A stretch of 64,000 bases of DNA from Octopus sinensis (GCF_006345805.1 NC_043024.1:4836001-4900000); one strand, 5' to 3'. Numbered from the stretch's first letter, positions 18,880 to 58,421 are shown. Translations and numbers: made by a program. The notes: a model not told the origin generated them from the sequence alone.

Positions 18880-18883
18880 TGAT

Positions 18884-22097: not shown

Positions 22098-22140
22098 GAC
22101 ACACAAGCTGGTTATCATATATATATATGTATGTATAGAT

Positions 22141-29850: not shown

Positions 29851-30152
29851 AATAATAGTGATTTTTGAGGAAGAATTTTCAAAGAAACGCTTTCAAAAAA
29901 ATATCAAATCTATAAAGTAGAGCCGAAATTCTTAAAAGAATAGAGTTAGTTCCCCTTGAACTTTCATCTGCGTTTTGAGAAATTTGCTGCCTTTTGTTGA
30001 GAGAGTTCGATTTTTTGCTCATCGTTGTTTGTGTTAATTGTTAATTGAACAGTGCCCGTTGTGTAACGGTAATTTTCGCCCTACGGGGCAGAAAATTCTC
30101 TATTTAATATTGTTATTACCTTCGAAGGTAATTTTTGAAACATTTTTGAGAA

Positions 30153-31589
30153 ATGGATTTCGACTTGGCGTCGAAGAATGATTTTCCCGCGATGGGAACA
30201 AGTGAATTAAAGGACACTGAAGTAACAAAACAGTCTTTTTCGGCCGCGGTAGGCGGAACCATGATGGACGTTGAATTCAAGATCGAACAACTGTTCGAAT
30301 TTAGGAACTTGGTGAAAATGGAAGGAAACGAAATCAAACTTGTACCGCCGCAAGCGAAGGTACAAGAAATAAAGGAAAAAACAGTTATATACAAAGTGTA
30401 TAGCTACAAAGAAAAGAAAATTATGGACGTCAGAAACGAAATTGTCGAAAAGTGCTTGTCCCCGGTGTGGGACAAAATTCGCCATGTCGTTCGAGGTGCT
30501 CGCAGCGCTACTGTTGAAGCACATTTTGACTCGGCTGAGGTAGCAAGAGAGGTGTCATCATTGACCCTGAAAAATGATGATATCATGCTGCTACCCTCGT
30601 ATATGGGAAAAAGAACAGCTAAACTGCTGGTAGAGGACATACCGAGAGGGTATGATATAATGTGGGTAGCAGCGGCGGTCCTGCACAATGTAGAGCGGGA
30701 AATTTCGATTCTGCAGATGAGAAGGAAAGAGGAGGTACGCTGGAAGGGACAGACGCTGGAACTCCTCGTTCAGGCAGAAAACAAGATATTGGAGAACCTG
30801 CCCGATAGGATATTTAACGAAGATGCAACGTCCATGAGAGTGTCAGTGGAGGGGCGCAGACCTAGATGTTTTAAATGTGGCGAGAAGGGTCACGTCCGCT
30901 CGAACTGCTTAAAAAAAAAGAAAACCAACGAAGCCCCTCCTCAAAGTGCTTCAAACACTGTAGGGGAGAAGGCGGAAAAAGATAACAAGACGACGACAAG
31001 CAAAGAAACAGAAACGGAGGATTGTATCGTACAAATGGATTACACACAGGTGACACACAAAAGAAAAAAAGACAACACCCTGGACTCCCCTCCCCAAACA
31101 AGGAAAAAATCAGCAAGCACCGCAGACATACACACAAAGCAAATTCCCCAGCCCTACCCCCATGGCACTGTATTCATTGGGAAACAGTTCGCCAAGCCCC
31201 TCCCCATAAAACAAGATGTGAAAAAGTCTTTAAAAAAAAATGATAAGATCATTGCTTTTGATGAAAAAAACCAAAGGGTATATAAATACTATAAATTTTC
31301 AAAATTTAAACTATTTAGCAAGGCTACAGACATAAAAGCAACCACTCGCTTCGCAAAAATAAAGGAAGACGAGTGGAAGGAGGAAATACTACAAGAACAT
31401 CTAAAGAATAGACTGATTAGAGATGTAACAAAAGAAGTACTGGAGGGTAAACTTGTTATAACCCTGGCAACCACACCTACCCAGAGCCCGGTGGCAACGC
31501 CGGTTAAGAGCCCTGCAGCTACGACCACAAGGGAGGAAGAAGGGGAAGCGGGCAGATTTAAACTGTCATGCTCCCTTTCTCAACCGTAA
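30153..31589 (+). CDS. LINE ORF1 protein (478 aa) with a CCHC zinc knuckle
   Basis: CFKCGEKGHVRSNC, basic C-terminal half, directly upstream of ORF2. Confidence 0.9.
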   Translation: MDFDLASKNDFPAMGTSELKDTEVTKQSFSAAVGGTMMDVEFKIEQLFEFRNLVKMEGNEIKLVPPQAKVQEIKEKTVIYKVYSYKEKKIMDVRNEIVEKCLSPVWDKIRHVVRGARSATVEAHFDSAEVAREVSSLTLKNDDIMLLPSYMGKRTAKLLVEDIPRGYDIMWVAAAVLHNVEREISILQMRRKEEVRWKGQTLELLVQAENKILENLPDRIFNEDATSMRVSVEGRRPRCFKCGEKGHVRSNCLKKKKTNEAPPQSASNTVGEKAEKDNKTTTSKETETEDCIVQMDYTQVTHKRKKDNTLDSPPQTRKKSASTADIHTKQIPQPYPHGTVFIGKQFAKPLPIKQDVKKSLKKNDKIIAFDEKNQRVYKYYKFSKFKLFSKATDIKATTRFAKIKEDEWKEEILQEHLKNRLIRDVTKEVLEGKLVITLATTPTQSPVATPVKSPAATTTREEEGEAGRFKLSCSLSQP

Positions 31590-31616
31590 GTTCATTTATT
31601 TTTTCTCTCACCGACA

Positions 31617-34600
31617 ATGGCTAAGCTGGGTTGTGTGAATGTACGTGGAATGGGGACGAAATGGAAACAAATTTGTTTCCTGAACGACCTCACGACACAT
31701 GGAGTAGACATAGCTATTGCAACCGAGTCCAAGATGAACGAGGCCCAAGCGTTCTCGCCTCTTCTAAATGGGTTCGAGAAATTTATTTCTCCTAGCCGAG
31801 GAAGAGGCAGAGGCGTGGCAGTCCTTATCAGGAAGAGCTTGGACTTGCAGGTAAGTACTGTCTTTCTGGACCCAGAAGGCAGGCTGGTTGTTCTGGATGT
31901 GACCCACGTAAGTAAACAGTCCTTCAGGTTGGTAGCTGTCTACGCTCCGAACGAGGGTAGACAGACGGGTTTTTTTCGGAACCTGGAGCCCTTTTTAGCG
32001 ACGTCGAAAACGGTAATCCTAGTAGGGGACTTTAACACTGTCCTTGAAGCGCGGGTCGACAGTGTTGGCTCAACCAATAGGAAGGGGAACCCTAGCCTCA
32101 AGGGTCTACTAGAGAGCTTTGATCTAGTGGACCGTTACCGACTGGATGAGCCGAGCGTTCCACAGTGGACGTGGAGTAACAACGACGGCTCACACAGATC
32201 GTATTTAGATAGGATATTTATTAAGAAAAGAGATAAGGATACGTTTAGTTGTCCACAGTTTCACATTGTGCCTTACACGGATCACAAATTTGTGACGTGT
32301 AGGATGCAAGTAGACAAGTGTCATAGACAGGGACCCGGGTACTGGAAGCTGAACAAGGCTATTTTGAATTGTGAAGACTTCCGTACCCGGATTAAGGTGT
32401 TAGTACAGAGGGCATTGTGTGGCACCATCATTAACAATAGATGGTGGCACTCCCTCAAAAGAGCCATTCGTTCAGAGTCCATTAGATTTAGCAATAAGCT
32501 AAGGTTAGATAGGTCTAGGATAGAGGACGATTTAGTTAAGAATCTAAACGAGGCAATGGAAGCTGGCTCTGCATCCGGAGTGATGGCGGCAAGGACGGTA
32601 TTGTACCGTCACCTTAACTCCAAACACGAAGGTTGCAGAGTCAGAGCTAAGCTACGCGCTGGGAAACGAGAAGGTATTAACGTTGCCGGATGGGCCCGTC
32701 GAGTGGAGAGTCAGAGAGGTAACAAAGCCTCAATCAAGTCTTTAACTGACGAACAGGGACAAAAGATCTATGGACAGGAGGAGATGCAAAAGTTTCTTCA
32801 CCAGCATTTCGCCCGCGTGTTCGGGGGTGGTGTGGCGCCGGAGCGGGGGAGGACCTTAAAGGATTTCCTGGCCGGCGGACCGCGGCTCTCGGGGCGTGAG
32901 GTGGAGTGCTGTGAAGAAGCGATCACTCCCGCGGAGATAGAGGGGATACTGGCCGGATGCGCCGGGGAGAAGTCGCCGGGGTTGGATGGTCTGCCCTACG
33001 AGTTTTACCAAAGTATGCCGGACTTGTTCGGGGGAATATTGGCAGGCGTCTACACGAACTGGCAGCAGAATGGGAGAATTCCCAGTTCTGTAAGCCGGGG
33101 AGTGGTGACGCTAATCCAGAAAGACCCGAGCAAGGGGGATAACATTAGTAACTACAGGCCCATAACTCTACTTAATGTAGAGTTAAAGATTTTGGCCAAG
33201 GTGTTGGCAAAAAGGTTGACGGTTGTCGTGGAGAAACTTGTAGGCAGAGCACAGACATGTGCAATTCCAGGCAGGTCGATCCAGGACAATCTTCACCTTA
33301 TACGCTACACCTTAGATAGGGTGGGTAAATTAACCGGCAAGGGCGGGGTAATGGTCCATTTAGACCAAAGTAAAGCGTTCGATAGGGTAGACCATGAGTA
33401 CCTGGCGACGGTCCTCGAAGCGGCTGGACTGGGCCCTGAATTTCGCGGGTGGATCTCCGCTATGTATAGCGGCATCAAGTCCACCGTCCAGATAAACGGT
33501 TACCTAACGGAACCGTTTTCGATCGAATGTTCAGTTCGTCAAGGGTGCCCCTTGTCACCACTTTTGTACGTGTTGGCTCTTGAGCCATTGCTGCGAAAGT
33601 TGGAGAGGCTGGGAAGTAACTCGGATGAGATCGGAGGTGGGAGGACGGTTACTGCTTATGCGGATGACGTCACCCTCATCGTGTCCAATGAGGCCCAGCT
33701 ACCTTGTGTGGAAGAGGCTATCAGAGGATACGAGGAGGTGGCAGGAGCAAAGGTTAACAAGGACAAGTTGGTTGGCTTGCGCCTCGGCACCTGGAGGAGC
33801 AAGTCGATATCGTCCAGTGTCGTGGGACACTGGACGGATGGCCCTGTTAAGTTGCTAGGAGTTTGGTTTGGGCCAGACTCCCAAACGGAGAGGAACTGGA
33901 GTGAGGTGACGAGCAAGGTGGAGGCCATAGTACGGACCTGGTCCGGAAGGTTTCTGTCCTTGAAAGGAAGGGTGGAGGTGGTACAGATGTTCATTGCATC
34001 TGTAATCACTTACCGCCTGACCGTTGTCCCTTGCCCCGATTCATGGCTTAGCAAGTTGGAGCGAATCCTTTTCCGCTTTTTGTGGAAGGGAGGAAAGCCA
34101 CTTGTGAGGCGCTCCGTTTGCTGCCAGGAACCGTTAAAGGGTGGGTTAGGAATGCCTTGGTTGATGATGCGCAGACATGCGTTGAGGCTGAAGCATCTCT
34201 GGCACCACCAGGAGGGTGATAAGGTGTGGAGTCCACTGGCAGGGGAATTTTTCCCGAGACCAGCCTCCTTAGTGAATTTTAAACCCGGTCGCATCAAAAG
34301 ATGGAAACTGACTTTATGGCAAAAGGAGTGCCGACCGGCACTCACGCTGATCCACAAGGCGGGCAAGGCCGGCTGCGGAAATACCACCTCGGTATTTTAT
34401 AGAAGGCTGGTAGAGGCAAAGAACGACGACGTCCTAGGAGGGGCTCTGGGGTTTGACGAAGACCAGCTTACCAACCTGTTTAAAAAGACTTTCAGGACGG
34501 GGTATTTGGATAATTTCCAAAGATCCCTGGCTTGGCAGTGCTATACCTGTTCGCTTTACCTGTTCGCGAGAAGTTATCGCGGCACGGAATTTCAGTGCCA

Positions 34601-34998
34601 CCGACGTGTCCAAGGTGCGAGTTGGACGATGAAACCGTCCAGCACGCTTTTGTACACTGTCGGAAGTTGTCCGACTTGATAAGTTACGCAGAACACGTGT
34701 TATCGCATCTGGGACGAGTACAGCTGTTGGCTGAGTCTATGATTAAGATGATACCGCCAACTGGACTCTCGAAGGAAGGTGAGGCATGTTTTCACTGCGC
34801 GGTGGCAGTAGTAAAAGAATGCATGTGGCGAACAAGAATGGAAGGAGTCGCGATAGGATCCTTTGTCTCGGGCCCCGGCTTGCTCACTTACTTCAGATAT
34901 CATCTGAAGAGCAAAATGGGGCTGGAAAAGAGGATCTTACCACGGGGTGTGTATGAGAAAAGATGGAAGGAAGTGGAAAAAAAAGGTGGGTGTCAGAA
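31617..34998 (+). pseudogene. LINE ORF2 (APE endonuclease, RT, C-terminal Cys/His), frameshifted near 34545 and 34980
   Basis: NVRG, GDFN, YLDRIF, TDH; KSPGLDG, YRPITLL, QGCPLSP, YADD; CPRC-x7-H-x4-C. Confidence 0.92.
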
Positions 34999-35267
34999 AC
35001 CCAGCTTAACTATGGAGGGAGGAGAGGAAACAAAAGCTGCGGGGCCTTATAAATTGCCGGGGTTTAAAACTTCGGTAAGATCGAAAGTTTATGAAATGTT
35101 ATAATATTCTATTGGTCACGTAAAGGACAATTTACAGACGAATTTTTATAATGAATAATCCAAATGTTATGGAAAATTTTTAATCGAACCTCTTAACTGT
35201 TTTTTGCATGTATGTCCTGTATTTGTCCTTCTATGTAACGATTGTATAATCATAATAAAGAAATATG

Positions 35268-35930
35268 GAGTTAGTTCCCCTTGACAACTCTTCCTAATTT
35301 TCTTTATTTCTTGCTCCTGTTTCTCACGCACCTTGATTGTTTGATCAGCTCCACTTTACGACTGATATTTAAGAGACAATCCAATCAAATATATACAAAT
35401 GATTGGTAATTAACTGTCTAAAGAAACAGATACAGCATTTACGATTATGTGGACGTGAAAAATATGAAGTAACGTTCGTTGGAAATAGGAAGAAATTCTC
35501 TTGAAGCTGTCAGTGTCCGCTCTGATTCGTTGACTCTCTCTTTATATCATTTACTATGTAAGTATTATAAAGACATTTCTATTGTATTAAGTATCATATT
35601 ACGTACATCTGTTTTTTTCCATGTGTTGAATTAAAAGAATCTCACTAAACAAAGACGAAATTATATGAAAGTAAGGCTGTTATTTTAATAATTACGATGT
35701 AATTCGTAAGAAAAGATGGGGAATGTATAAAAGTATGAATGTGCGCTTGAATTACTGAAACGAAAAGATAATATCTTTTACAGACGAAATGAAAGGGCTT
35801 TGAATTGAAACACTAGAAAGTACCTAATTTGACCAAAAATAAATATAATAATCCCTTTATATAATCTTTTACTCCAAAAATTAGTAGAGAAGATATTAAA
35901 AAAAATATCGACACGACATAAAATGAAGGC
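35268..35930 (+). promoter_or_regulatory. ZNF promoter/exon block for ZNF-4
   Basis: CCAAT pair at 35381-35406, donor at 35558, acceptor at 36754. Confidence 0.65.
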
Positions 35931-36404
35931 TGATCGCTGTTGTTTAAAAACTATCGCCTTGTGAAATTTAGTTTACTCGAATCAGTCACCAATAATTTAA
36001 TTTTCCATGCTTGAAGCATTATAAACATTTTTATGTCCATTAAAATATATAGACATTATAATAATAATAATCAAAAAGTCACTGAGAATGGTTTTAAGTG
36101 TGGTTTCACATTTTTATACTTCCCACTCCCTCGGAAAAATTCTTACACATAAATCCCCATATATTCTTAACCTAAACGAGATTTCTTGAAAATGTCATTA
36201 AAAACCATCCATTTACGTGGAAGTTACGAGGCAACAAAGTGAATGGGGTACTGATCTGTAGTTATGCCGTCATTTTATGATAATGGCAAAGTAAAACACG
36301 CCTACTCCATTGCTGGGATATAAGCAAAGGGAAAAAAGATGCTGATTTAAATTTTTACTCGCACACCAACCGAGTGAGGCCGTGTATATTTGGGGGTAGG
36401 GCAA

Positions 36405-36490
36405 AAACATATCACTGTGACATCAGGGGTAAATCATTCTCTGTTAGTAGTTGCCTAACTAGACCCAAGCATACTCAGACACTGGACAAA
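36405..36490 (+). pseudogene. Single relic zinc finger inside the inferred ZNF-4 intron
   Basis: Translates [26 protein letters not shown]. Confidence 0.6.
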
Positions 36491-37180
36491 ACACCCTTCA
36501 GATGAAACCATCTGCTGTCTAGTGTCATTGACATGTATATTGGTATCTGCGTGTGTCTAGGAAAGGCTTAATGTCCAGGAGGTGTTATTATAATACATGT
36601 GTCTACTCCCTCATGCAAACCTCTTGAAAATAGATGGGATAAATATAATAGTTCAGATAAATTTATGAAAACAGAAATGTCGTAAATTTGCACTTTTTAA
36701 TATCTGCCTTTTAAACATACTTTATGACTCATATTATTTTTTCTATTCTTTCAGAAAATCACATGAAGTTGGCTAAAAAGTATTTTTTGCTTTTAAAGAA
36801 TCATCAATATGTATCATGTTTGAAAGACTCTGCAAAGATATTCTACAAATATATAATCCTGCTTCTATAAAACATTCCTGAGTTACAGTAAAATATTTCC
36901 TCTAAGAGAGAAAGCATTTCTTTACTTCTGTGTCTGAAATGTGCAAGAGATATTTTTCTCTTTTAAATATACTTTGATGGATTTCCAAAGAGTATTTGCG
37001 GCATTTTTAAATATTGGCATTGATCACATTTTGAAGAAATATAAGAAAAGTGATATTTGTTTGGAATAAACTATAAAAACAAAAAGAAAAATATCCGTAT
37101 ACTTTGGTGAGAGGAGAAATATTTTTGAAAAGTTGTTGATCTGTACAACTTGAAGGATTAATTTTATTTTTCTTGAAGAG

Positions 37181-38296
37181 ATGTCTGTAGAATTAAGAAA
37201 ATCATCATATGACTGTGACATCTGCAAAGAGTCATTCTTAGAAGAAAGTAGATTCAATCAACACAAACAAATTCATACAGGGGAGAAACCATATCACTGT
37301 ACTGTCTGTGGTAAATCATTGTCTGACAGGAGTAGCTTTGCTCGTCACAAACGTATTCATACGGGGGAGAAACCTTATCACTGTAGTATCTGCGGTAAAT
37401 CATTCTCGAATGACGGTCACTTAGCTCAACACAAACGTACTCATACAGGAGAGAGACCTTATCCTTGTGATATCTGTGGTGAATCCTTCTCTGCTGGCAG
37501 TAGCTTAACTCGTCATAAACGTATTCATACAGGAGAGAAACCATTTCCTTGTGATGTATGTGGTAAATCTTTCCCTGAAAACTGTAGCTTAACTCAACAC
37601 AAACGTATTCATACAGGGGAGAAGCCATATCACTGTAGTATCTGTGGTAAATCATTCACTAATGACAGTCACTTAATACGACACATACGTATCCATACAG
37701 GAGAGAAACCTTATCCCTGCGACATCTGTGGTGAATCGTTCTCTGTTGGCAGTAACTTAACTCGTCATAAACGTATCCATACAGGAGAGAAACCATTTCC
37801 TTGTGATATATGTGGTAAATCTTTCACTGAAAAAAGTGGCTTAACTAAACACAAACGTATTCATACAGGGGAGAAACCATATCCCTGTGATATCTGTGGT
37901 GAATCATTCTCTCGTAGTTATAGCTTAGATATTCACAAACAAATCCATACAGGTGACAAAAGATACCACTGTGATACCTGTGGTAAATCATTTTCTGCTG
38001 GCAGTAGATTAACTACACACAAACTAATTCATTTAGGGGAGAAACCATATCATTGTGATATCTGTGGCAAATCATTCAGTCAGACAGGTAATTTAACCAG
38101 ACACAAACGCATTCATACAGGTGAACAACCATATCGCTGTGATACCTGTGGTAAATCTTTCAGTCAGGCAGGTAACTTAGCTACACACAAACGTATTCAT
38201 ACAGGTGAGCAACCATATGATTGCGATATCTGTGGCAAATCATTCTCTGAAAAGGGTATTTTAACTACACACAAACTTATCCATACTGGTGTATAG
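37181..38296 (+). CDS. C2H2 zinc-finger protein ZNF-4 (371 aa, 13 fingers)
   Basis: TAG where ZNF-3 has AAG removes only the terminal atypical finger (frame continues to 38386). uORF at 36763-36870. Confidence 0.93.
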   Translation: MSVELRKSSYDCDICKESFLEESRFNQHKQIHTGEKPYHCTVCGKSLSDRSSFARHKRIHTGEKPYHCSICGKSFSNDGHLAQHKRTHTGERPYPCDICGESFSAGSSLTRHKRIHTGEKPFPCDVCGKSFPENCSLTQHKRIHTGEKPYHCSICGKSFTNDSHLIRHIRIHTGEKPYPCDICGESFSVGSNLTRHKRIHTGEKPFPCDICGKSFTEKSGLTKHKRIHTGEKPYPCDICGESFSRSYSLDIHKQIHTGDKRYHCDTCGKSFSAGSRLTTHKLIHLGEKPYHCDICGKSFSQTGNLTRHKRIHTGEQPYRCDTCGKSFSQAGNLATHKRIHTGEQPYDCDICGKSFSEKGILTTHKLIHTGV

Positions 38297-40419
38297 CCAT
38301 ATCATTGTGATTTATGCAATAAATCATTCTCACAAAAACATCAATTAATTAAACACAAGTGCACTTGTTATGCAAATGATCCGTAGCGCAATGACATTTC
38401 TTGTATAACATTCCCCGAGGAAAACCTTTAGACATGATTGAAACGATGTTATGAATGTGATATCTCTAGTAAATCTTTCATTTGAAATCATCCATTGACA
38501 GAGGAAGGAAAACACATCACTGTGATGTTAAACCTGAATCATTCTTTCAAAATGGTGAATTGTTTGTACACAGTCCTATTAATATGAAAGATATAACTGT
38601 AACCTAAGCTCTTTGTGCTAAATCAATCTATGAAAATGATCAATTATTGAAATGTAAATGCATTCATACAGAAGAAAAACCACGATGATGATGATCCTCA
38701 TCATTTAAAATTCACTTTTCCATGCTTCTATGGATCAGATGGAATTCATTGATGGAGATTTTCTACATCTGGGTACCTTTCTTGTGACCAATCCTCACCA
38801 GTTTCTAGGCAAGGACATATTTTCCCTGGTGAGACATTTTTGACTCAGAAGACTGGAAATGAACAACTGCACAAGTATGACGGTCATGATGGCCATTTAC
38901 GAGCATAATATACAATCTGGACAAGGGTACACACACACTCACTGACACACTTGTTCAAAGATTTACTTGTTTTCTCTACATGTAAAAGTTTGTGATTCCT
39001 ATTAGGAAATGAAACACATGTAATGCTGAATAAATAATATCAAACTTTTCTCCAGTCTCTTTATGTGATATGTAATTACCTTGCAAAAAATATTATCCAA
39101 ACCTCCCACAAAAATAATACACACACACACACACACACACACACAGATGTGGTGGTGAGTGCATAGTGAAAACGGTTTTGTCTTTTCATTGAAATAAATT
39201 TTTGTATCACCTACAAATTGAAATTTGTATTGGCTCTGATCCATCACCTTGGCTTATAAGTTACCAATGATGTGGTTTTCAGTGTATGCCATGTTCCTTT
39301 AATTTTTTACTCACATGAAATTGTGACTCCTATATTTTACTATACAATTTTTGTTTTCTAGAAGAATAATTTGAGCATTTCAATTTCAAAATGTAATTTT
39401 ATTTGTTATGGTCAAAATGGAAAAATAAGAGTGAATATTTATTTTATGAGTGCTGTGTATTAAGTCTATAAAATTGTGCATAAAATATATAAGCTATATG
39501 AAGTGCATTGAGTCATTATTATATTCCAATTTCCTTCACTTTTCAATGAATAAGAGATGGGTGACTATCTTTTGATTCAGACACAACACAGGCTACACTT
39601 TCGAGGTTTTAGATAAAGTTTTCAGAAATAACCGAATAGGTTTGCTATTAATTCATGAAATGTTCACGGGTCCCACTAGTTCACATTAAGAGAATCATGT
39701 AGTGAACTGAAGGTAGAGGTGAAGAATGAGAGACAAAGTGGAAGGGAGAAGTGTTAATGATATGTGGTGTAGTGAAGAAGGAATACTTATTACTTGGTTA
39801 ACAGGTTAGCTGAAGGGAAAAATGAAGAGAAAGAGATATGTTTAGGATACATTATTTGTGAGAGAGTGAGGTTAAAGAGAAGGAGATAGAAAGAGATGGA
39901 CAGTGGAGGCAGATAGGGTTTGTATTGTTAAAAGTTGATATCATCAAAGACCTGAAATGAAATAAATTTTGTTCCTGAAACTTATAGTGATGATGATGGT
40001 GGTGGTGGTGTGTTGATTGCAAAAAGGATTTTCTTTTTTTTATAAAGACCATCACTCAACACTTGCACTTCTGTGCAATTATTTATCGCCTTCTCACTTA
40101 AGAGATTGATATTTCTTTCTAAGGATTAATTTAGCCTAAACTATGGATTCACAAGAGACACAGTTGCAAGCTGCCTGAGAAAAGATGCACAGATCTAGAG
40201 CATGGAACACTAAGAAGATATAATAAAAAAGAGGAAAAAGATGGCACCGATGGTGTTGTGAGGAATTGGATGTAGACAGATGCCAAGTATATTCAAAGAA
40301 AGCTAAAACTATGAATGCTATAAAAATGCAAATCATCCTCTCTTTCTTAAATAGGTCCTCTTAATTTTTTTCATTCTGTAGAATTTACATGGGTCCCACT
40401 AGTAATTAATAATAAACTA

Positions 40420-40640
40420 AAGTGGCAAACTGGCAGGGTCGTTAGCACGTTGGGGAAAATGCTTAGCTCTGGGTCTTCTGACATGACATTTGCATTTAAA
40501 TTCTGCCAAGGTGGACTTTGTCCTACATCCAGAGATGGGTTTGATGAAAGGAAGCCCCTTTTGAGCACTGGAGTTGAAATAATCAATTCAATGCTTCCTG
40601 TGGAATTTCCGGCCTTGTTCCAAAATCTCAAAACCGTTAA
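40420..40640 (+). mobile_element. Old SINE-like remnant (paralog at about 60065-60295)
   Basis: CTGGCAGGGTCGTTAGCAC...AAATTCTGCCAAGGTGGACTTTG is shared by both copies; the SINE call is from recall of similar repeats. Confidence 0.5.
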
Positions 40641-41080
40641 TTCCAGTCTCTTATATTCACTCTCACCCATGGAAATGCCATGACCATGGGATGTGTGCCA
40701 CCAGAGGGGGAGAAGAAGGAAACCTCGTTGGTGGGATGTGTGCCACCGAGCGAGGAAGCTGAGGCCCCTCCCGATGAATGAGTGGAAAAATTTGTTCTAT
40801 TGGAGGGGAGGGGCCATTGATAATTATGTGGAAAATGTCCTTGACAGTCGGGGACTAATAGACCCGACTTTCATTGACAGACCAGAGTGGCCTCCTCAGG
40901 TGGCTGCTCTGGTACAGGAAAGAAAGGGCTCTTTTCACATGTCAGTGCCATCTTTATGTAAGTAGTACCCGCAATAATAGTGATTTTTGAGGAAGAATTT
41001 TCAAAGAAACGCTTTCAAAAAATATCAAATCTATAAAGTAGAGCCGAAATTCTTAAAAGAATAGAGTTAGTTCCCCTTGA

Positions 41081-44000: not shown

Positions 44001-46354
44001 TGTGAAGAAACGATCACTCCCGCGGAGATAGAGGGGATACTGGCCGGATGCGCCGGGGAGAAGTCGCCGGGGTTGGATGGTCTGCCCTACGAGTTTTACC
44101 AAAGTATGCCGGACTTGTTCGGGAGAATATTGGCAGGCGTCTACACGAACTGGCAGCAGAATGGGAGAATTCCCAGTTCTGTAAGCCGGGGAGTGGTGAC
44201 GCTAATCCAGAAAGACCCGAGCAAGGGGGATAACATTAGTAACTACAGGCCCATAACTCTACTTAATGTAGAGTTAAAGATTTTGGCCAAGGTGTTGGCA
44301 AAAAGGTTGACGGTTGTCGTGGAGAAACTTGTAGGGAGAGCACAGACATGTGCAATTCCAGGCGGGTCGATCCAGGACAATCTTCACCTTATACGCTACA
44401 CCTTAGATAGGGTGGGTAAATTAACCGGCAAGGGCGGGGTAATGGTCCATTTAGACCAAAGTAAAGCGTTCGATAGGGTAGACCATGAGTACCTGGCGAC
44501 GGTCCTCGAAGCGGCTGGACTGGGCCTGAATTTCGCGGGTGGATCTCCGCTATGTATAGCGGCATCAAGTCCACCGTCCAGATAAACGGTTACCTAACGG
44601 AACCGTTTTCGATCGAATGTTCAGTTCGTCAAGGGTGCCCCTTGTCACCACTTTTGTACGTGTTGGCTCTTGAGCCATTGCTGCGAAAGTTGGAGAGGCT
44701 GGGAAGTAACTCGGATGAGATCGGAGGTGGGAGGACGGTTACTGCTTATGCGGATGACGTCACCCTCATCGTGTCCAATGAGGCCCAGCTACCTTGTGTG
44801 GAAGAGGCTATCAGAGGATACGAGGCGGTGGCAGGAGCAAAGGTTAACAAGGACAAGTCGGTTGGCTTGCGCCTCGGCACCTGGAGGAGCAGGTAGATAT
44901 CGTCCAGTGTCGTGGGACACTGCACGGATGGCCCTGTTAAGTTGCTAGGAGTTTGGTTTGGGCCAGACTCCCAAACGGAGAGGAACTGGAGTGAGGTGAC
45001 GAGCAAGGTGGAGGCCATAGTACGGACCTGGTCCGGAAGGTTTCTGTCCTTGAAAGGAAGGGTGGAGGTGGTACAGATGTTCATTGCATCTGTAATCACT
45101 TACCGCCTGACCGTTGTCCCTTGCCCCGATTCATGGCTTAGCAAGTTGGAGCGAATCCTTTTCCGCTTTTTGTGGAAGGGAGGAAAGCCACTTGTGAGGC
45201 GCTCCGTTTGCTGCCAGGAACCGTTAAAGGGTGGGTTAGGAATGCCTTGGTTGATGATGCGCAGACATGCGTTGAGGCTGAAGCATCTCTGGCACCACCT
45301 GGAGGGTGATAAGGTGTGGAGTCCGCTGGCAGGGGAATTTTTCCCGAGACCGGCCTCCTTAGTGAATTTTAAACCCGGTCGCATCAAAAGATGGAAACTG
45401 ACTTTATGGCAAAAGGAGTGCAGACAGGCACTCACGCTGATCCACAAGGCGGGCAAGGCCGGCTGCGGAAATACCACCTCGGTATTTTATAGAAGGCTGG
45501 TAGAGGCAAAGAACGACGACGTCCTAGGAGGGGCTCTGGGGTTTGACGAAGACCAGCTTACCAACCTGTTTAAAAAGACTTTCAGGACGGGGTATTTGGA
45601 TAATTTCCAAAGATTCCTGGCCTGGCAGTGCTATAGGAATGCTTTACCTGTTCGCGAGAAGTTATCGCGGCACGGAATTTCAGTGCCACCGACGTGTCCA
45701 AGGTGCGAGTTGGACGATGAAACCGTCCAGCACGCTTTTGTACACTGTCGGAAGTTGTCCGACTTGATAAGTTACGCAGAACATGTGTTATCGCATCTGG
45801 GACGCGTACAGCTGTCGGCTGAGTCTATGATTAAGATGATACCGCCAACTGGACTCTCGAAGGAAGGTGAGGCATGTTTTCACTGCACGGTTGCAGTAGT
45901 AAAAGAATGCATGTGGCGAACAAGAATGGAAGGAGTCGCGATAGGATCCTTTGTCTCGGGCCCCGGCTTGCTCACTTACTTCAGATATCATCTGAAGAGC
46001 AAAATGGGGCTGGAAAAGAGGATCTTACCACGGGGTGTGTATGAGAAAAGATGGAAGGAAGTGGAAAAAAAGGTGGGAGTCAGAAACCCAGCTTAACTAT
46101 GGAGGGAGGAGAGGAAACAAAAGCTGCGGGGCCTTATAAATTGCCGGGGTTTAAAACTTCGGTAAGATCGAAAGTCTATGTAATGTTATAATATTCTATT
46201 GGTCATGTAAAGGACAATTTACAGACGAATTTTTATAATGAATAATCCAAATGTTATGAAAAATTTTTAATCGAACCTCTTAACTGTTTTTTGCATGTAT
46301 GTCCTGTATTTGTCCTTCTATGTAACGATTGTATAATCATAATAAAGAAATATG
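41081..46354 (+). mobile_element. LINE family A, copy 2, full length; ORF1 intact (41273-42706), ORF2 broken
   Basis: TSD at 41064-41080 and 46355-46371. ORF2 has a 12-nt insertion (about 42890), deletions (about 43546 and 43790), a 1-nt loss (about 44527) and a stop at 44896. Confidence 0.95.
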
Positions 46355-47070
46355 GAGTTAGTTCCCCTTGACAACTCTTCCTAATTTTCTTTATTTCTTG
46401 CTCCTGTTTCTCAAGCACCTTGATTGTTTGATCAGTTCCACTTGACAACTGATATTTAAGAGAAAATCCAATCAAATATATACAAATGATTGGTAATTAA
46501 CTGTCTAAAGAAGCATTTACGATTCTGTGGAGCTGAAAAATATGAAGTAACGTTCGTTGGAAAAAGGAAGAAATTCTCTTGAAGCTGTCTGTCCGCTCTG
46601 ACTCGTTGACTCTCTCTTTATATCAATTACTATGTAACTATTATAAAGACATTTCTATTGTATTAAGTATCATATTACGTACATCTGTTTGTTTCCATGT
46701 ATTGAATAAGTTAAAAGAAAGTATCTCACCAAACAAAGAAGAAATTATATGAAAGTAAGGCTGTTATTTTAATAATTACGATGTAATTTGTAAGAAAAGA
46801 TGGGGAATGTATAAAAGTACGATTGTGCACTTGAATTACTGAAACGAAAAGGCAATATCGTATACAGACGAAATGAAAGGGCTTTGAATTGAAACACTAG
46901 AAAGTACCTAATTTGACCAAGAATAAATATAAAAACCCGTTTATATAATCTTTTGCTCAAAAATTTGTTGTGAAGATATAAAAGAAATATCGACACAATA
47001 TATATATAGACATAATAATCAAAAAGTCACTGAGAATGGTTTTAAGTGTGGTTTCACATTTTTATACTTA
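46355..47070 (+). promoter_or_regulatory. Orphan ZNF promoter block, donor mutated to GTAACT (46634)
   Basis: CCAAT pair at 46468-46493; no ZNF exon before the gap. Confidence 0.55.
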
Positions 47071-47189
47071 CGAAATACAAAACCGAATTAAGAGGAAGCA
47101 TTATCTTAATTGAGTCATTATGTCGTAAAAAAGAACATAATAAATGCTAAGAATCAGAGAAAAGATCAACAAAAGTAAAAGATTATTAT

Positions 47190-47235
<46 letters not shown>

Positions 47236-47671
47236 AGATACATCTTTAATTAAACTATTGACCGCCTTAAAACAGGTTTCAACAGACAAATATTACTATA
47301 ATGGATAATATAAGCATATAACTACTTATACACACATACAATAAATACAGACACACACATTAGTCAGACATATAGCCACATATACACACACTGCAAGAAT
47401 ATATTTATTATAAAGTTTAAACAGAACATGGAATGAAATGTATTTATTTATAAACTTTAAACTGAACTTCTATTGTTTTATAAGCCTAACGGCGAACCTG
47501 ACGCAAATACACGAAGTTGACGACTTTCACTTCTGACAGCTAAAAGCATGACAGTATGCAAATCTTCTTTTGCCCAATGATTTGTTCACACTTCAATTTT
47601 GCCCAATAATTTGTTGACACTTCAATTTACTATTTTCTAGAAATGTTTTTTTCTAAATTATTGATATGTTA

Positions 47672-48105
47672 TTTTTTTTTCCTTGTGAAAATTCCGGGGG
47701 AGGGGGTTACCCCGCCTTTCCGGAGCAATTCCGGACCAAAATATGGGATTTGCAGCATATTAGGAGGTCAGGGTACTTGATTCCACGCAAAAAATCTGAT
47801 TTTTTTTTCTTGTGAAAATTCCGGGGGGGGGGGTTACCCCCCCTTTCCGGAGCAATTCCGGACCAAAATATGGTATTTGCAGCATATTAGGAGGTCAGGG
47901 TACTTGATTCCACGCTAGAAATCTGATTTTTTTTTTTTTTTCCTTGTGAAAATTCCGGGGGTGGGGTAATACCCCCCCCCCCCCTTTCCGGAGGAATTCC
48001 GGACCAAAATATGGGATTTGCAGCATATTAGGAGGTCAGGGTATTTGATTCCACGCAAAAAATCCGAGTTTTTTTTTTTTCTTAGTGAAAATCGTGGGGG
48101 TGATA
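47672..48105. repeat. Minisatellite, three units of about 127-138 bp plus a partial unit
   Basis: Unit CTTGTGAAAATTCCGGGGG...CCGGACCAAAATATGG...GATTCCACGC at 47682, 47809, 47943 and (partial) 48081. Confidence 0.9.
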
Positions 48106-48125
48106 ATCTGTAATTTTACCTACAC

Positions 48126-48344
48126 ATGTACATAAAAGCATACCTACATATATCTACCTACACACATACCTATACATACATGCACGTATATACACATACG
48201 TACACGTACCTACCAATTCATATCTACACGCATACACATACATACATCTACACACACACAGAAGACAAGTCCATATATATACACAAATATATATATACAT
48301 ATTATATATATACATATACATATATAACATATACATATATATAC

Positions 48345-48419
<75 letters not shown>

Positions 48420-48675
48420 CACGCACGCACCTACCTACATATACATACACATATATAGTTACACCAGTCATATACATACCTACATACACATACATCCATA
48501 TATCTATACATATACATACACATATATATACACATGCACATACTAATACATACGCATATCTATGCACACACATCTATCTACATATATAAAAAAAAGAAAC
48601 CCAACAAGTCATACTATAACACACATACACATACATACATACATATACACATATATACCCATACATATATACACA

Positions 48676-48724
<49 letters not shown>

Positions 48725-49124
48725 GGGCTTAGTAAAATAAATTACTTTGCCGCATACTGAACTCATTAGAAATAGCAGCTAAAAAACTTTTTTAAGGCTA
48801 TTTCTAATAGCCTTAAAAAAGTTTTTTAGCTGCTATTTCTAATGAGTTCAGTATGCGGCAAAGTAATTTATTTTACTAAGCCCTTTTATATAATGTAATA
48901 ATTGAATTCGCCTTGAATGGTCCCTTTGCATACTGAACACTTGTGGTGAAATTGATTAATAATTAATTAATTTTGCCCTCAATTGTTGAAATTATATATA
49001 TATATATATATAACACATACATATACATACACACACGTCTACATACACATACATATACATCCGTAAGCACACCCATATCCATATACATCCACAGAGGTAT
49101 ACAGGCATATCCACACATATATAT

Positions 49125-49159
<35 letters not shown>

Positions 49160-49171
49160 ATATACATATAT

Positions 49172-49213
<42 letters not shown>

Positions 49214-49217
49214 TCAT

Positions 49218-49253
<36 letters not shown>

Positions 49254-49296
49254 TAACATAGATAATATATACATAATATATATATAGATATATATA

Positions 49297-49333
<37 letters not shown>

Positions 49334-49441
49334 ACACATATAGATATATATATAGATATATATATATATAATAGTATATACATATATATATATAGATGTA
49401 TGTATATATAATATATGTGTATATATATATATATATATATG

Positions 49442-49474
<33 letters not shown>

Positions 49475-49695
49475 CTATATATAGGTATATATATATATAT
49501 ATATTATGTATATATATATATGTATATATAGCATATATGATATATGTAGATATATATAGATATGTATATATATATGTAGATATATATATATATGATATAT
49601 GTATATATATATTATATATATATGTATATATATATATATATATAGATGTATATATATATGTATATGTATATATATATATGTATATATATATATAG

Positions 49696-49749
<54 letters not shown>

Positions 49750-50179
49750 TATATATATATATATATATGTATATATATAGATATATGTATAGATATATAT
49801 ATGGTATATATATATATATATAGATTATGTATATATATATATAATATATATATATATATATGTATATATGTATATATATACAGAATATATATATATTATG
49901 TATATAGTATATATATAGTATATGTATATAGATATATGTATATATATATGTAATGTATATTATATTATATATATGTATCTATATATATGTATATATATAA
50001 TATGTATGATGTATATATATATATATCTATCATATAGAGATAGTATATGGATATATATATATAGGGAGTATATAGATATATATATATATATATATTATCT
50101 ATATGGATATGTATAGATATATATATGTAGGATATATATATATATATAGGTGTAGATATAATATATATATATGTATATG

Positions 50180-50240
<61 letters not shown>

Positions 50241-50412
50241 TATGTATAGTATATATATATATATATATATGTATATGTATATATATATAGATATATGTAT
50301 ATATATATATATATATGTATATGTATATTATATTATATGTTATGTATATATATATGTATATATATATATATATAGTATATGTATATATATATATATATGT
50401 GTATATGTATAT

Positions 50413-50446
<34 letters not shown>

Positions 50447-50455
50447 GTGTATATG

Positions 50456-50489
<34 letters not shown>

Positions 50490-50510
50490 TATGTATATGT
50501 ATATATGTAT

Positions 50511-50558
<48 letters not shown>

Positions 50559-50640
50559 GTATACTATATAATATGTATATATATATATGTATACATATAT
50601 ATATATATGTATATGCATATATATATATATATGTATCTGC
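48126..50640. repeat. Long (TA)n/(CA)n/(TATG)n low-complexity tract
   Basis: Direct inspection. Confidence 0.97.
48720..48888. repeat. Perfect inverted repeat with 83-bp arms and a 3-nt loop
   Basis: 48720-48802 is the exact reverse complement of 48806-48888. Confidence 0.95.
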
Positions 50641-51400
50641 CTCCCTTTGGGAGTTATACAAATCTACAATATAGGATTTCTTCAATTACAATTTACCTAG
50701 CAATTTTAAGAGTACAATGCATCGCGTCATGCCAGGTCCAGGTTTTAAAATTTAAACTCCAATTAAGCAAAATTTACAGAGAAAACTCACATTCTGGTGT
50801 GTGTGTCAAATGCTTTCTTAGTCTGGTTACAGCACACGCAAACGCACACACACACTGTTGTAACGAATAAAATGAAACTAGATGTAATATTTGTTTAATG
50901 TCCATGAACGCTGATAGATACATGAGTAAAATGTATGGGAAGCTAACAAATAAGAGTGAGTGAAAATGTTCTTGGAAGAGAGTAAATTGAAGCTTGAGAA
51001 CAATCAGATACATTTGCAACACATCTGTTGAAAATATTATTATTCACACACACATACATATACAATATACATACAGACAGACAGACAGATAGACCACCAC
51101 ACACACACACAATGATCCAGCATGGCCACAACCTCAAGGCTGAAACATATAAAGAATAACAGAATATAAATGTGTGCATGTGTGTGAGAGAGAGAGAGTG
51201 TGTGTGTTATATGTATGTACGTATGTGTATATATATAATAATGCGGTTTTTTCAACAGCTTGAACTAAAAGTCAGAGGGGAATGGGATAAACTACTTATA
51301 TAACTTGCTATAAAAGCAGGTAGTAATTTTATCTTGTCCTTATTCATAGTGCAAGTTCTGAAGAGTGCATTTCGATTTTAACAGCTATTTTTTTCAAGCT

Positions 51401-51545
51401 ATGTTGGAAGTAACAAAGGAGCATATTTGGCATATTTTGCTTTATGAGTTCAATAAAGACAACAACGCAACGGAAAGTACACAAGAAATATTAATGCAGG
51501 ATATGGGGATTGGACAATAAGCGTAAGGCAGTGTCAATGGTGGTT
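51401..51545 (+). pseudogene. Mariner transposase N-terminal fragment cut by the assembly gap
   Basis: MLEVTKEHIWHILLYEFNKDNNATEST/RNINAGYGDWTISVRQCQWW resembles the mariner N-terminal HTH region. Confidence 0.7.
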
Positions 51546-51645
51546 NNNNNNNNNNNNNNNNNNNNNNNNNNNNNNNNNNNNNNNNNNNNNNNNNNNNNNN
51601 NNNNNNNNNNNNNNNNNNNNNNNNNNNNNNNNNNNNNNNNNNNNN
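51546..51645. other. Assembly gap (100 N)
   Basis: Run of N. Confidence 1.
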
Positions 51646-54405
51646 CAGCTAAGGTTAGATAGGTCTAGGATAGAGGACGATTTAGTTAAGAATTTAAACG
51701 AGGCAATGGAAGCTGGCTCTGCATCCGGAGTGATGGCGGCAAGGACGGTATTGTACCGTCACCTTAACTCCAAACACGAAGGTTGCAGAGTCAGAGCTAA
51801 GCTACGCGCTGGGAAACGAGAAGGTATTAACGTTGCCGGATGGGCCCGTCGAGTGGAGAGTCAGAGAGGTAACAAAGCCTCAATCAAGTCTTTAACTGAC
51901 GAACAGGGACAAAAGATCTATGGACAGGAGGAGATGCAAAAGTTTCTTCACCAGCATTTCGCCCGCGTGTTCGGGGGTGGTGTGGCGCCGGAGCGGGGGA
52001 GGACCTTAAAGGACTTCCTGGCCGGCGGACCGCGGCTCTCGGGGCGTGAGGTGGAGTGCTGTGAAGAAGCGATCACTCCCGCGGAGATAGAGGGGATACT
52101 GGCCGGATGCGCCGGGGAGAAGTCGCCGGGGTTGGATGGTCTGCCCTACGAGTTTTACCAAAGTATGCCGGACTTGTTCGGGGGAATATTGGCAGGCGTC
52201 TACACGAACTGGCAGCAGAATGGGAGAATTCCCAGTTCTGTAAGCCGGGGAGTGGTGACGCTAATCCAGAAAGACCCGAGCAAGGGGGATAACATTAGTA
52301 ACTACAGGCCCATAACTCTACTTAATGTAGAGTTAAAGATTTTGGCCAAGGTGTTGGCAAAAAGGTTGACGGTTGTCGTGGAGAAACTTATAGGGAGAGC
52401 ACAGACATGTGCAATTCCAGGCAGGTCGATCCAGGACAATCTTCACCTTATACGCTACACCTTAGATAGGGTGGGTAAATTAACCGGCAAGGCCGGGGTA
52501 ATGGTCCATTTAGACCGAAGTAAAGCGTTCGATAGGGTAGACCATGAGTACCTGGCGACGGTCCTCGAAGCGGCTGGACTGGGCCCTGGATTTCGCGGGT
52601 GGATCTCCGCTATGTATAGCGGCATCAAGTCCACCGTCCAGATAAACGGTTACCTAACGGAACCGTTTTCGATCGAATGTTCAGTTCGTCAAGGGTGCCC
52701 CTTGTCACCACTTTTGTACGTGTTGGCTCTTGAGCCATTGCTGCGAAAGTTGGAGAGGCTGGGACGTAACTCGGATGACATCGGAGGTGGGAGAACGGTT
52801 ACTGCTTATGCGGATGACGTCACCCTCATCGTGTCCAATGAGGCCCAGCTACCTTGTGTGGAAGAGGCTATCAGAGGATACGAGGCGGTGGCAGGAGCAA
52901 AGGTTAACAAGGACAAGTCGGTTGGCTTGCGCCTCGGCACCTGGAGGAGCAAGTCGATATCGTCCAGTGTCGTGGGACACTGGACGGATGGCCCTGTTAA
53001 GTTGCTAGGAGTTTGGTTTGGGCCAGACTCCCAAACGGAGAGGAACTGGAGTGAGGTGACGAGCAAGGTGGAGGCCATAGTACGGACCTGGTCCGGAAGG
53101 TTTCTGTCCTTGAAAGGAAGGGCGGAGGTGGTACAGATGTTCATTGCATCTGTAATCACTTACCGCCTGACCGTTGTCCCTTGCCCCGATTCATGGCTTA
53201 GCAAGTTGGAGCGAATCCTTTTCCGCTTTTTGTGGAAGGGAGGAAAGCCACTTGTGAGGCGCTCCGTTTGCTGCCAGGAACCGTTAAAGGGTGGGTTAGG
53301 AATGCCTTGGTTGATGATGCGCAGACATGCGTTGAAGCTGAAGCATCTCTGGCACCACCTGGAGGGTGATAAGGTGTGGAGTCCGCTGGCAGGGGAATTT
53401 TTCCCGAGACCGGCCTCCTTTGTGAATTTTAAACCCGGTCGCATCAAAAGATGGAAACTGATTTTATGGCAAAAGGAGTGCCGACAGGCACTCACGCTGA
53501 TCCACAAGGCGGGCAAGGCCGGCTGCGGAAATACCACCTCGGTATTTTATAGAAGGCTGGTAGAGGCAAAGAACGACGACGTCCTAGGAGGGGCTCTGGG
53601 GTTTGACGAAGACCAGCTTACCAACCTGTTTAAAAAGACTTTCAGGACGGGGTATTTGGATAATTTCCAAAGATCCCTGGCCTGGCAGTGCTATAGGAAT
53701 GCTTTACCTGTTCGCGAGAAGTTATCGCGGCACGGAATTTCAGTGCCACCGACGTGTCCAAGGTGCGAGTTGGACGATGAAACCGTCCAGCACGCTTTTG
53801 TACACTGTCGGAAGTTGTCCGACTTGATAAGTTACGCAGAACATGTGTTATCGCATCTGGGACGCGTACAGCTGTCGGCTGAGTCTATGATTAAGATGAT
53901 ACCGCCAACTGGACTCTCGAAGGAAGGTGAGGCATGTTTTCACTGCACGGTTGCAGTAGTAAAAGAATGCATGTGGCGTACAAGAATGGAAGGAGTCGCG
54001 ATAGGATCCTTTGTCTCGGGCCCCGGCTTGCTCACTTACTTCAGATATCATCTGAAGAGCAAAATGGGGCTGGAAAAGAGGATCTTACCACGGGGTGTGT
54101 ATGAGAAAAGATGGAAGTAAGTGGAAAAAAAGGTGGGTGTCAGAAACCCAGCTTAACTATGGAGGGAGGAGAGGAAACAAAAGCTGCGGGGCCTTATAAA
54201 TTGCCGGGGTTTAAAAGATCGAAAGTTTATGTAATGTTATAATATTCTATTGGTCATGTAAAGGACAATTTACAGACGAATTTTTATAATGAATAATCCA
54301 AATGTTATGGAAAATTTTAAATCGAACCTCTTAACTGTTTTTTGCATGTATGTCCTGTATTTGTCCTTCTATGTAACGATTGTATAATCATAATAAAGAA
54401 ATATG
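51646..54405 (+). mobile_element. LINE family A, copy 3 (5' part lost in the gap); RT frame open 51706-54120
   Basis: About 98% similar to copies 1 and 2. The stop is only about 11 codons short of the consensus end. The 3' junction is at GAGTTAGTTCCCCTTG (54406-54421). Confidence 0.95.
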
Positions 54406-55300
54406 GAGTTAGTTCCCCTTGTTGAGTCTTCCTAATTAAGTGTATTTCTTGTTCTTGTTTCTCACGCACTTTGATTGTTTGATCAGTTCCACTTGACAAC
54501 TGATATTTAAGAGAAAACCCAATCAAATATATACAAATGATTGGTAATTAACTGTCTAAAGAAACAGATACAGCATTTACGATTATGTGGACGTGAAAAA
54601 TATTAATTAACGTTTGTTGTAGAAACCTAGAAATTCTCTTGAAGCTGTCGTTGTCCACTCTGACTCCAGTTCTCACATCTTCCTCCTTCACTCTTTCTCT
54701 CCATACCTATTACTATGTAAGTATTTATTTAAACATTTCTATTATATATGTGTCGTATTATGTACATTTATTTGTTTCGATGTGTTGAGATAGTTAAAAG
54801 AAAAGAAAATCTCACTAAGACGAAATTATACGAAAGGCTGTAATTTTAATACTTTCATTGTGTTGTCGTTTTCTTTTAGACATTTCATTGCACTTTTGGT
54901 TATTTTCTAAATTATTTGTAAAAACGTCGGATCAATCCCTTGTTTAGATAACATTTATCTTTCTTTCTAACGTGTAAATTCGACAATTTCGTTAAATGCG
55001 GGAAAATTACGATGCAATTAGTAAGAAATGGGGAATGTATAAAACTACGAGTGTGCACTTGAAATACTGAAACGAAAAGCAAATATCGTATCGAGAGGAA
55101 ATGGATCGGCTTTTATTCAAGAGATAGGAAGTCTTTATTTCCGGTGGTTTTTCTACATCATTAAAAGTTAGAATTAATATGTTTTTCTAATTTATTTAAT
55201 TTTTGTGTGTGTGGAGTGCTGCTTTAAGCACCTAATATAATCCCTCGTCACATATTTTTATTTGGGGGAATTTTCAGAAATTTTTGCGTACGAGAATTCG
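54406..55300 (+). promoter_or_regulatory. ZNF promoter/exon block for ZNF-5
   Basis: CCAAT pair at 54519-54544, donor at 54717, acceptor at 56368. Confidence 0.65.

Positions 55301-56813: not shown

Positions 56814-58421
<1,608 letters not shown>

Follow-up and report, generated by a model that had tools for sequence, protein, structure and literature searches.

Target-specific long interspersed nuclear elements (LINEs) are thought to survive by means of harmless multicopy sequences, such as ribosomal DNA (rDNA), small nuclear RNA (snRNA) genes, tRNA genes, microsatellites, telomeres and other transposons. The Dictyostelium TRE elements and yeast Ty3 integrate at a fixed distance upstream of tRNA genes, leaving the coding sequence intact, and they find RNA polymerase III (Pol III) complexes through protein contacts and no defined DNA sequence. 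Among LINEs of the Tx1 clade and other target-specific LINEs, the described targets are rRNA, snRNA and tRNA genes, microsatellites, telomeric repeats and other transposons (PMC4494074, PMC4640811). The upstream region of a protein-coding gene family was not reported as a LINE target in the limited library of literature that was searched. Here, we describe LINE A, very probably a young, 5.3-kb, target-specific non-LTR retrotransposon (LTR, long terminal repeat) with an apurinic/apyrimidinic endonuclease (APE), which uses a site upstream of zinc-finger (ZNF) genes in Octopus sinensis. The stretch analysed, referred to as the window, comprises 64,000 bp (GCF_006345805.1, NC_043024.1:4836001-4900000; C28:4,836,001-4,900,000 in our numbering of the 2.72-Gb assembly) and contains an array of tandem C2H2 zinc-finger units. 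An earlier note on this DNA, made from its sequence alone, had proposed that the LINE uses the expanding ZNF family as a multicopy target, or that one insertion had spread between paralogues by conversion.

One insertion point upstream of the ZNF units

Each ZNF unit in the window is preceded by a conserved block of ~400 bp, which lies 1.9-2.4 kb upstream of the finger open reading frame (ORF) and in the same orientation. The target, the 17-mer GGAGTTAGTTCCCCTTG, is located inside this block and occurs nine times in the window (with at most two mismatches), against an expectation of 0. Homology between units reaches only ~110 bp upstream of the target; the insertion point is therefore inside the block, ~110 bp from its 5' edge. 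Three LINE A copies (Table 1) end exactly at ...AATAAAGAAATAT followed by GGAGTTAG..., and the target copy then reads GGAGTTAGTTCCCCTTG. An exact search for the junction 25-mer AATAAAGAAATATGGAGTTAGTTCC returned three places in the window (35254, 46341 and 54392). On their 5' side, copies 1 and 2 carry a duplication, AGAGTTAGTTCCCCTTG, which matches the 3' copies at 16 of 17 positions. In the flank of copy 1, CCAAT, ATTGG and a GTAAGT splice donor are found at +114, +135 and +301 from the start of the 17-mer; the CCAAT/ATTGG pair and the donor are kept in the 22 sequences aligned, and TATA-like AT stretches are also present in the block. The common junction of the three copies, the 16-17 bp duplication beside copies 1 and 2 and the distances of the site from the CCAAT pair and the donor, all described in the earlier note, were thus confirmed.

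Copy 1 is full length. Its ORF1 encodes 478 amino acids with a CCHC knuckle, and its ORF2 carries APE and reverse transcriptase (RT) domains with a frameshift near residue 976; the family's normal stop corresponds to position 35006, and this late frameshift removes the zf-RVT end that is still present in copy 3. The 3' untranslated region (UTR) of LINE A ends in the bases given above, without poly(A). The alignment of copy 3 begins at the first base past the run of N, at LINE position ~2540, and its 5' end is not within the assembled sequence. The N-terminus of a Mos1-type (mariner) transposase (51362-51520, HTH_48, 2.6e-07) adjoins the left side of the gap, which therefore joins unrelated sequence to LINE copy 3. 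As the earlier note had stated, copy 3 sits in a different flank type: its flank belongs to the other clade (type B) and is 15-16% different from those of copies 1 and 2.

Two sites, 62673 and 15580, are true empty sites with the structure expected before an insertion with a 16-17 bp duplication, since the sequence found 5' of the LINE (..AAAGTAGAGCCGAAATTCTTxAAAGAxT) is joined in both of them directly to a single target copy, which is followed by the downstream block. Among the three empty sites listed in the earlier note, these two stand. The third, at 23332, does not: its target is perfect, but homology to the other units is lost exactly at the nick. The ~160 bp upstream of this site (from 23170) are unique within the window and the sampled loci, and an insertion that was aborted or deleted may have left the site as its footprint. 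We also considered whether another element ends exactly at 23331, which is not supported; homology to element B stops ~80-160 bp earlier, and the remaining bases are unique. Directly upstream of the site, at 22138-23250 (+), lies a partial copy (81-87% identical) of a further non-LTR element, which has a weak PHD-like match as well as an RVT_1 domain and whose other copy, at 9790-12300 (+), is antisense in the intron of a minus-strand ZNF unit. One further target, missing from the earlier list, is a degenerate remnant at 6227.

An older relative of LINE A, with ~75% nucleotide identity in the RT region, was observed at 15873-19156 (-); its 3' UTR contains a ~390-bp hairpin-like insert (15975-16360) around a CA/TA-rich core. 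This minus-strand LINE (16198-19156) was rejected as an occupant of the target, as its poly(A) end lies ~290 bp upstream of the 15580 site.

Table 1. Targets, LINE A copies and ZNF features in the window (positions counted from its first base)
Position	Strand	Feature	Remarks
6227-6243	-	Degenerate target remnant (AGACTTAGTTCCCCTTG)	Homology to the block is lost after ~45 bp
7019-9779	-	C2H2 finger exon	First of the finger exons listed for the window
15564-15580	-	Empty target (GGAGTTAGTTCCCTTTG)	Type-B unit
19602-21780	listed with the + group	C2H2 finger exon	
23332-23348	+	Perfect target, type-A block 3' of it	Homology to all other units stops exactly between 23331 and 23332 (nick position)
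25824-28567	+	C2H2 finger exon	
29565-29941	+	Downstream end of the ZNF unit before LINE copy 1, forming its 5' flank	99.2% identical to 40687-41062
29942-29958	+	5' target-site duplication, copy 1 (AGAGTTAGTTCCCCTTG)	
29959-35266	+	LINE A copy 1, full length, 5,308 bp	5' UTR 29959-30152; ORF1 30153-31589; ORF2 from 31617
35267-35283	+	3' target-site duplication, copy 1 (GGAGTTAGTTCCCCTTG)	
35284-35914	+	Conserved upstream block, flank type A	CCAAT 35381, ATTGG 35402, GTAAGT donor 35568; putative promoter and non-coding exon 1
36500-39135	+	C2H2 finger exon, unit downstream of LINE copy 1	ORF 37181-38296 begins shortly before the fingers
41063-41079	+	5' target-site duplication, copy 2 (AGAGTTAGTTCCCCTTG)	
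41080-46353	+	LINE A copy 2	ORF1 open; ORF2 in at least 4 pieces
46354-46370	+	3' target-site duplication, copy 2	Then type-A block to ~46996
51546-51645	.	Assembly gap	Mariner-type HTH_48 fragment on the left, LINE copy 3 on the right
51646-54404	+	LINE A copy 3, 3' 2.76 kb only	ORF2 C-terminus with zf-RVT open
54405-54421	+	Target copy at the 3' junction of copy 3	Then type-B block and the ZNF exon at 55706-59248
55706-59248	+	C2H2 finger exon, unit after LINE copy 3	
62673-62689	+	Empty target (GGAGTTAGCTCCCGTTG)	Type-B unit

Junctions sampled from the whole genome

One whole-genome search was made with the last 200 bp of copy 1 as query. It gave at least 290 candidates, of which the best 40 were scored; 30 loci were returned with 1.5 kb on each side. 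The LINE ends at the same nucleotide of the same target, in the same orientation, in 22 of the 30 junctions. These comprise 19 copies in ordinary ZNF-block flanks, one copy (L028) whose target is deleted yet which lies within the same block, and two loci (L019 and L025) in which 13 bp of the target separate the end of LINE A from the 5' end of another LINE, called LINE C. The on-target junctions are distributed over the chromosome-scale contigs C28 and C2 and over small contigs. By contig, 18 of the 40 hits are spread across ~1.04 Mb of C28, where the ZNF cluster extends over ~1 Mb, and four fall within a 40-kb stretch of C2. L005 (C28:5,497,095) and L020, at the start of the small contig C9084, show no substitutions in the LINE tail and 200 bp of flank, and L020 is probably a redundant haplotig copy of L005 in the assembly.

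When copy 3 of the window is added to the 30 loci, all 31 junctions end in ...AAAGAA(A)T(AT), with no A-run. Six junction variants were observed (ATAT/GGAG, ATAC/GGAG, ATT/GGAG, ATAT/AGAG, ATAA/AGAG and the target deletion; the slash separates LINE and target), and LINE A tolerates variants of the target at positions 1, 9, 14 and 16. L016 is an on-target copy truncated to 371 bp, with a ~240-bp deletion in its 5' flank.

In both loci (L019:1-1500 and L025:1-1500, reverse strand), LINE C was recognised by its 5' UTR and ORF1 on the 3' side of LINE A, where it begins after GGAGTTAGYTCCC, 13 bp into the target. The ORF1 proteins of the two families align across 300 residues with 32% identity (E = 2e-40) and have the CCHC motif in common, and the LINE C copies in the two loci are 96.9% identical to each other. 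In the simplest reading, LINE C would have inserted first, with a 13-bp duplication, and LINE A later into the target copy that this had restored. Site-specific elements typically form such tandem stacks. The stacking suggests that the LINE lineage has used the ZNF target for a long time, and that recognition needs at most 13 bp downstream of the nick.

Repeated insertion or copying of one insertion

The distribution of LINE A could also have arisen in the absence of any site specificity, from one or a few chance insertions multiplied by tandem or segmental duplication of ZNF units together with conversion. We consider this highly improbable. The last 1.5 kb of the LINE show a median pairwise difference of 1.3% (0.1-3.4%), about ten times less than the 14.8% of the 700 bp after the duplication. 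In the flank tree, two clades with 100% support are 0.16 substitutions per site apart, and each contains filled and empty sites, with the empty ones nested among the filled. The LINE tree has the form of a star, with no internal branch above 0.002 except for L011-13. Copies outside the target, on other chromosomes, are intermixed in this tree and are of the same age, at 0.36-1.7% from the LINE consensus against 0.13-2.3% for on-target copies. The separate LINE and flank trees, a star and two deep clades, are therefore not equally diverged, which argues against a single copied insertion; congruence with equal divergence is found locally, at L011-13 only. At least 13 near-junction flank haplotypes occur among the 19 on-target copies, shared in three groups only, and in most locus pairs the flanks differ from the first bases past the duplication, which is hard to reconcile with conversion tracts that moved the LINE between paralogues. 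The junction variants, the truncated copy, the copy with a deleted target, the duplications that off-target copies have of their own and the second LINE family in the same target likewise speak against copying.

Copying has nevertheless occurred, and three cases in the sample favour it. L011, L012 and L013, which lie 12-28 kb apart on C2 and differ by 0.1% in the LINE and 0.1-0.4% in the flank, are plain segmental duplicates. L010, in contrast, which differs from these three by 0.1-0.6% in the flank but by 0.9-1.0% in the LINE, speaks for a separate event. In L006 and L023 the 71 bases that follow the duplication are identical, but the flanks are 15% different further out. The third case is that of copies 1 and 2 of the window, which share a young tract inside older flanks. 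Further upstream they are ~7% different; in the 5' flank of copy 1, of which the last ~110 bp alone are common to other units, there are three substitutions in 377 bp (0.8%); the LINE shows 62 differences in 5,308 bp (1.17%; 1.6% over the 5' UTR and ORF1); the first ~58 bp of the 3' flank are identical, including a variant unique to the pair; and the remaining 3' flank differs by 5.55% over 631 bp, or by 9.5% when 700 aligned bp are counted. The lower divergence of the LINEs than of their 3' flanks agrees with the earlier note. The best reading of this ~5.8-kb tract is that conversion or unequal exchange carried one insertion into the adjacent unit, so that copies 1 and 2 count as one insertion event and the window documents two events, not three. 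Across their last 2.7 kb, however, all three copies of the window are roughly equally far apart (23, 11 and 22 private differences), and the exchange between copies 1 and 2 must therefore be about as old as the LINE burst. A 5' transduction was rejected as the cause of the shared 5' flank, as no target or duplication is present upstream of 29565 or 40687; the same flank at L016 is just 90-95% identical, and it is therefore ZNF-unit DNA and not LINE sequence.

Several points weigh against repeated insertion at a specific site. The sample consists of the best-scoring 40 of at least 290 candidates and is biased towards the youngest copies. Eight of the 30 junctions, at seven places, are off target and at unrelated sequences. 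The 5' junctions of on-target copies were seen in copies 1 and 2 of the window only, and those two are not independent. In an approximately unbiased (AU) test, a clade of the LINEs in type-A flanks was not rejected (p = 0.32); the LINE tree is nearly free of signal, and the argument therefore rests on the roughly tenfold contrast in divergence depth and not on topology. Two of the off-target copies have duplications of 15-16 bp of their own, AAGACTTCTCAGTGCT in L014 and GGAGTTCACCTTGCTT in L027, from which it follows that LINE A transposed recently and with a constant spacing between the two strand cuts. Two others, L003 and L030 (C11: 76,040,284 and 76,049,411), are 9 kb apart and agree in their 3' flank and in an internal ~95-bp duplication; they are a local duplication of one off-target insertion.

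On balance, we reject the copying of one insertion as the general explanation, and duplication and conversion are secondary. The proposal of the earlier note that a LINE uses the ZNF family as its multicopy target is upheld by the 22 junctions, the contrast between LINE and flank divergence and the two clades with filled and empty sites, while spread by conversion is real for copies 1 and 2 and fails as a general account.

Classification and a possible insertion mechanism

The domains identified in LINE A are Exo_endo_phos (5.4e-13), RVT_1 (1.5e-32), a zf-RVT at the C-terminus of ORF2, and zf-CCHC. The GDFN, YAPN, LDRI and TDH motifs of its ORF2 align to the L1 endonuclease (L1-EN). In a search of the PDB, the closest solved relative of the APE and RT region was human L1 ORF2p (1.7e-70); the endonuclease matched L1-EN at ~1e-9, and R2 proteins matched the RT only. 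The endonuclease structures of R1Bm and TRAS1, which are PDB entries, were absent among the matches at E <= 0.01. These similarities suggest an L1-like element, and the PDB matches fit L1 or Tx1 without separating the two. The best match in the search for ORF2 homologues was 57% identical, in assembly GCA_024449705.1, and no entry matched ORF1 exactly. LINE A lacks the poly(A) tail and the degenerate TT/AAAA-like target of a canonical L1; its target is GGAGTTAGTTCCC.

By analogy with known APE-type LINEs, LINE A would insert by target-primed reverse transcription after a bottom-strand nick at T/GG. The machinery of the element would nick the bottom strand at ...AAAGAAT/GGAGTTAGTTCCC...., and the nicked end would act as primer, with reverse transcription starting directly at ...AATAAAGAAATAT, the fixed 3' terminus of the element, without poly(A). 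A cut in the top strand 16-17 bp downstream would then produce the target-site duplication, and gene conversion and segmental duplication would later multiply some of the copies. When on- and off-target insertions are taken together, the nick spacing is 15-17 bp. An AATAAA is located 7 nt before the end of the element, and transcripts of on-target copies should therefore run into the target copy, probably for some bases of GGAGTTAG.... This part of the RNA could pair with the end of the nicked DNA and so fix the point where reverse transcription begins.

The endonuclease, pairing between the nicked DNA and read-through RNA, or a combination of the two may confer the specificity. That it comes mainly from RNA-DNA pairing seems rather unlikely to us. 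In that case, transcripts that extend past the AATAAA into the target would pair with the 3' ends at nicks and prime precisely there, as the position of the AATAAA and the junctions without poly(A) would allow, and the family would be led back again and again to the places of its source copies. Read-through-assisted priming has reportedly been described for R1Bm. Four off-target sites begin with the first 4-6 bases of the target, namely GGAG (L009), GGAGT (L026), GGAGTT (L027, within the duplication) and AGACTT (L014), which also fits pairing, but L003/L030, L004 and L018 have little or no homology to the target start. Moreover, 4-6 paired bases are by themselves too few to direct 22 of 30 insertions to a single site among 2.7 Gb, and the constant nick spacing of 15-17 bp and the exact positioning point to a protein that recognises the site.

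Two similarities around the junction were also observed. The last bases of the LINE, TAAAGAAATAT, resemble the bases immediately 5' of the nick in the empty target, TAAAAGAAT. The C-variant of the target, GGAGTTAGCTCC, has short inverted arms, GGAG....CTCC (35250-35283 and 29925-29958 compared).

The sequence around the target

The position and orientation of the conserved block, its conservation and the absence of an intervening coding exon suggest that it is the promoter and a non-coding first exon of the ZNF genes. It is also conceivable that LINE A is site-specific and that the block is part of another repeat, such as an old transposon or a pseudogene array, which travels with the ZNF exons. 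Parallels exist in Tx1L, which inserts in Tx1D, and in the crocodilian Tx1-Mar, which inserts in Mariner-N4_AMi, and other transposons are among the known targets of the Tx1 clade (PMC4494074). Also in favour of this alternative, several ZNF ORFs of the window are interrupted, with an in-frame stop in unit B and an early end of the ORF in unit A. We nevertheless regard this alternative as unlikely. In every unit the block is colinear and co-oriented with a finger exon 1.9-2.4 kb downstream, and in many loci the type-B flanks run colinear with the ZNF unit over 1.3-1.5 kb. When the two unit types are compared, no other non-coding part is as well conserved as the first ~260 bp that follow the target (89% identity, against 77-82% or sequence that does not align beyond). 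The CCAAT/ATTGG pair, the TATA-like stretches and the conserved GTAAGT donor are features of the block that stand against a travelling repeat, and no coding exon separates the block from the finger ORF, in keeping with a first exon that is non-coding. A small RNA gene as the target was rejected, as the block matched no tRNA and no Rfam family, whether at the gathering score or with E <= 1. The search for ZNF homologues returned generic vertebrate ZNFs only.

It is possible, though we propose it only tentatively, that a site-specific L1/Tx1-like lineage with at least two families (LINE A and LINE C, whose ORF1 proteins are as little as 32% identical) is specialised for the promoter-proximal block in a tandemly expanding C2H2-ZNF family. 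If true, this would be the first non-LTR element with a niche at the 5' end of a protein-coding gene family transcribed by RNA polymerase II (Pol II). Its 5.3-kb co-oriented copies would then rewire the upstream regulation of many ZNF genes, and they would supply homology for unequal exchange and conversion that reshuffle the cluster, with the mosaic pairs as traces.

Other features of the ZNF array were also noted. In the unit downstream of LINE copy 2, the expected place of the finger exon is taken up by a 127-bp tandem repeat (3.2 copies, 47672-48092) and a 1.5-kb (AT)n tract (49139-50636). An inverted duplication of 625 bp with 98.9% identity (12966-13590 and 14275-14895) disrupts a minus-strand ZNF unit, where it lies between the upstream block and the finger exon.

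Implications and relation to known elements

LINE A is a real and well-supported site-specific LINE with an unusual class of target. By landing beside dozens of zinc-finger genes, ~110 bp upstream of their CCAAT boxes, it extends the multicopy strategy of target-specific LINEs to a protein-coding family, and it places a transposon beside a gene class that elsewhere in animals evolves to repress transposons. The element and its 13-17-bp site form a compact pair of protein and target for the study and engineering of APE-type site recognition. In addition, the series of filled and empty paralogues provides a natural gauge of the effect of a 5.3-kb upstream insertion on expression and on recombination within the cluster.

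LINE A shares several features with LINEs of the Tx1 clade, such as Tx1L in the piggyBac element Tx1D, Keno in U2 snRNA, Kibi and Koshi in microsatellites, and Tx1-Mar in Mariner-N4_AMi. They all have an ORF2 with APE and RT and an ORF1 of the CCHC type. In both groups, most copies are found at one sequence of a multicopy target in one orientation, and related families share or shift targets (PMC4494074, PMC4640811). LINE A differs from them in its target, the upstream block of tandem C2H2-ZNF genes that are presumably transcribed by Pol II. Elements of the R1 clade (R1 in 28S rDNA, TRAS and SART in telomeric repeats) resemble LINE A in their APE endonuclease, an exact insertion point and a duplication of fixed length; as in LINE A, no poly(A) tail is needed, and several lineages occur in one multicopy target. 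In contrast to the R1 clade, the ORF2 of LINE A matches human L1 and has a zf-RVT C-terminal domain, and its target is neither an RNA gene nor a telomere. The layout of two ORFs and the conserved catalytic motifs of L1-EN are shared with canonical L1, from which LINE A is distinguished by the lack of poly(A), by a defined, GC-containing target of 13-17 bp in place of the degenerate TT/AAAA, and by its CCHC-type ORF1. Finally, whereas TRE and Ty3 are guided to Pol III complexes, LINE A inserts with single-nucleotide precision at a defined sequence upstream of presumed Pol II genes.

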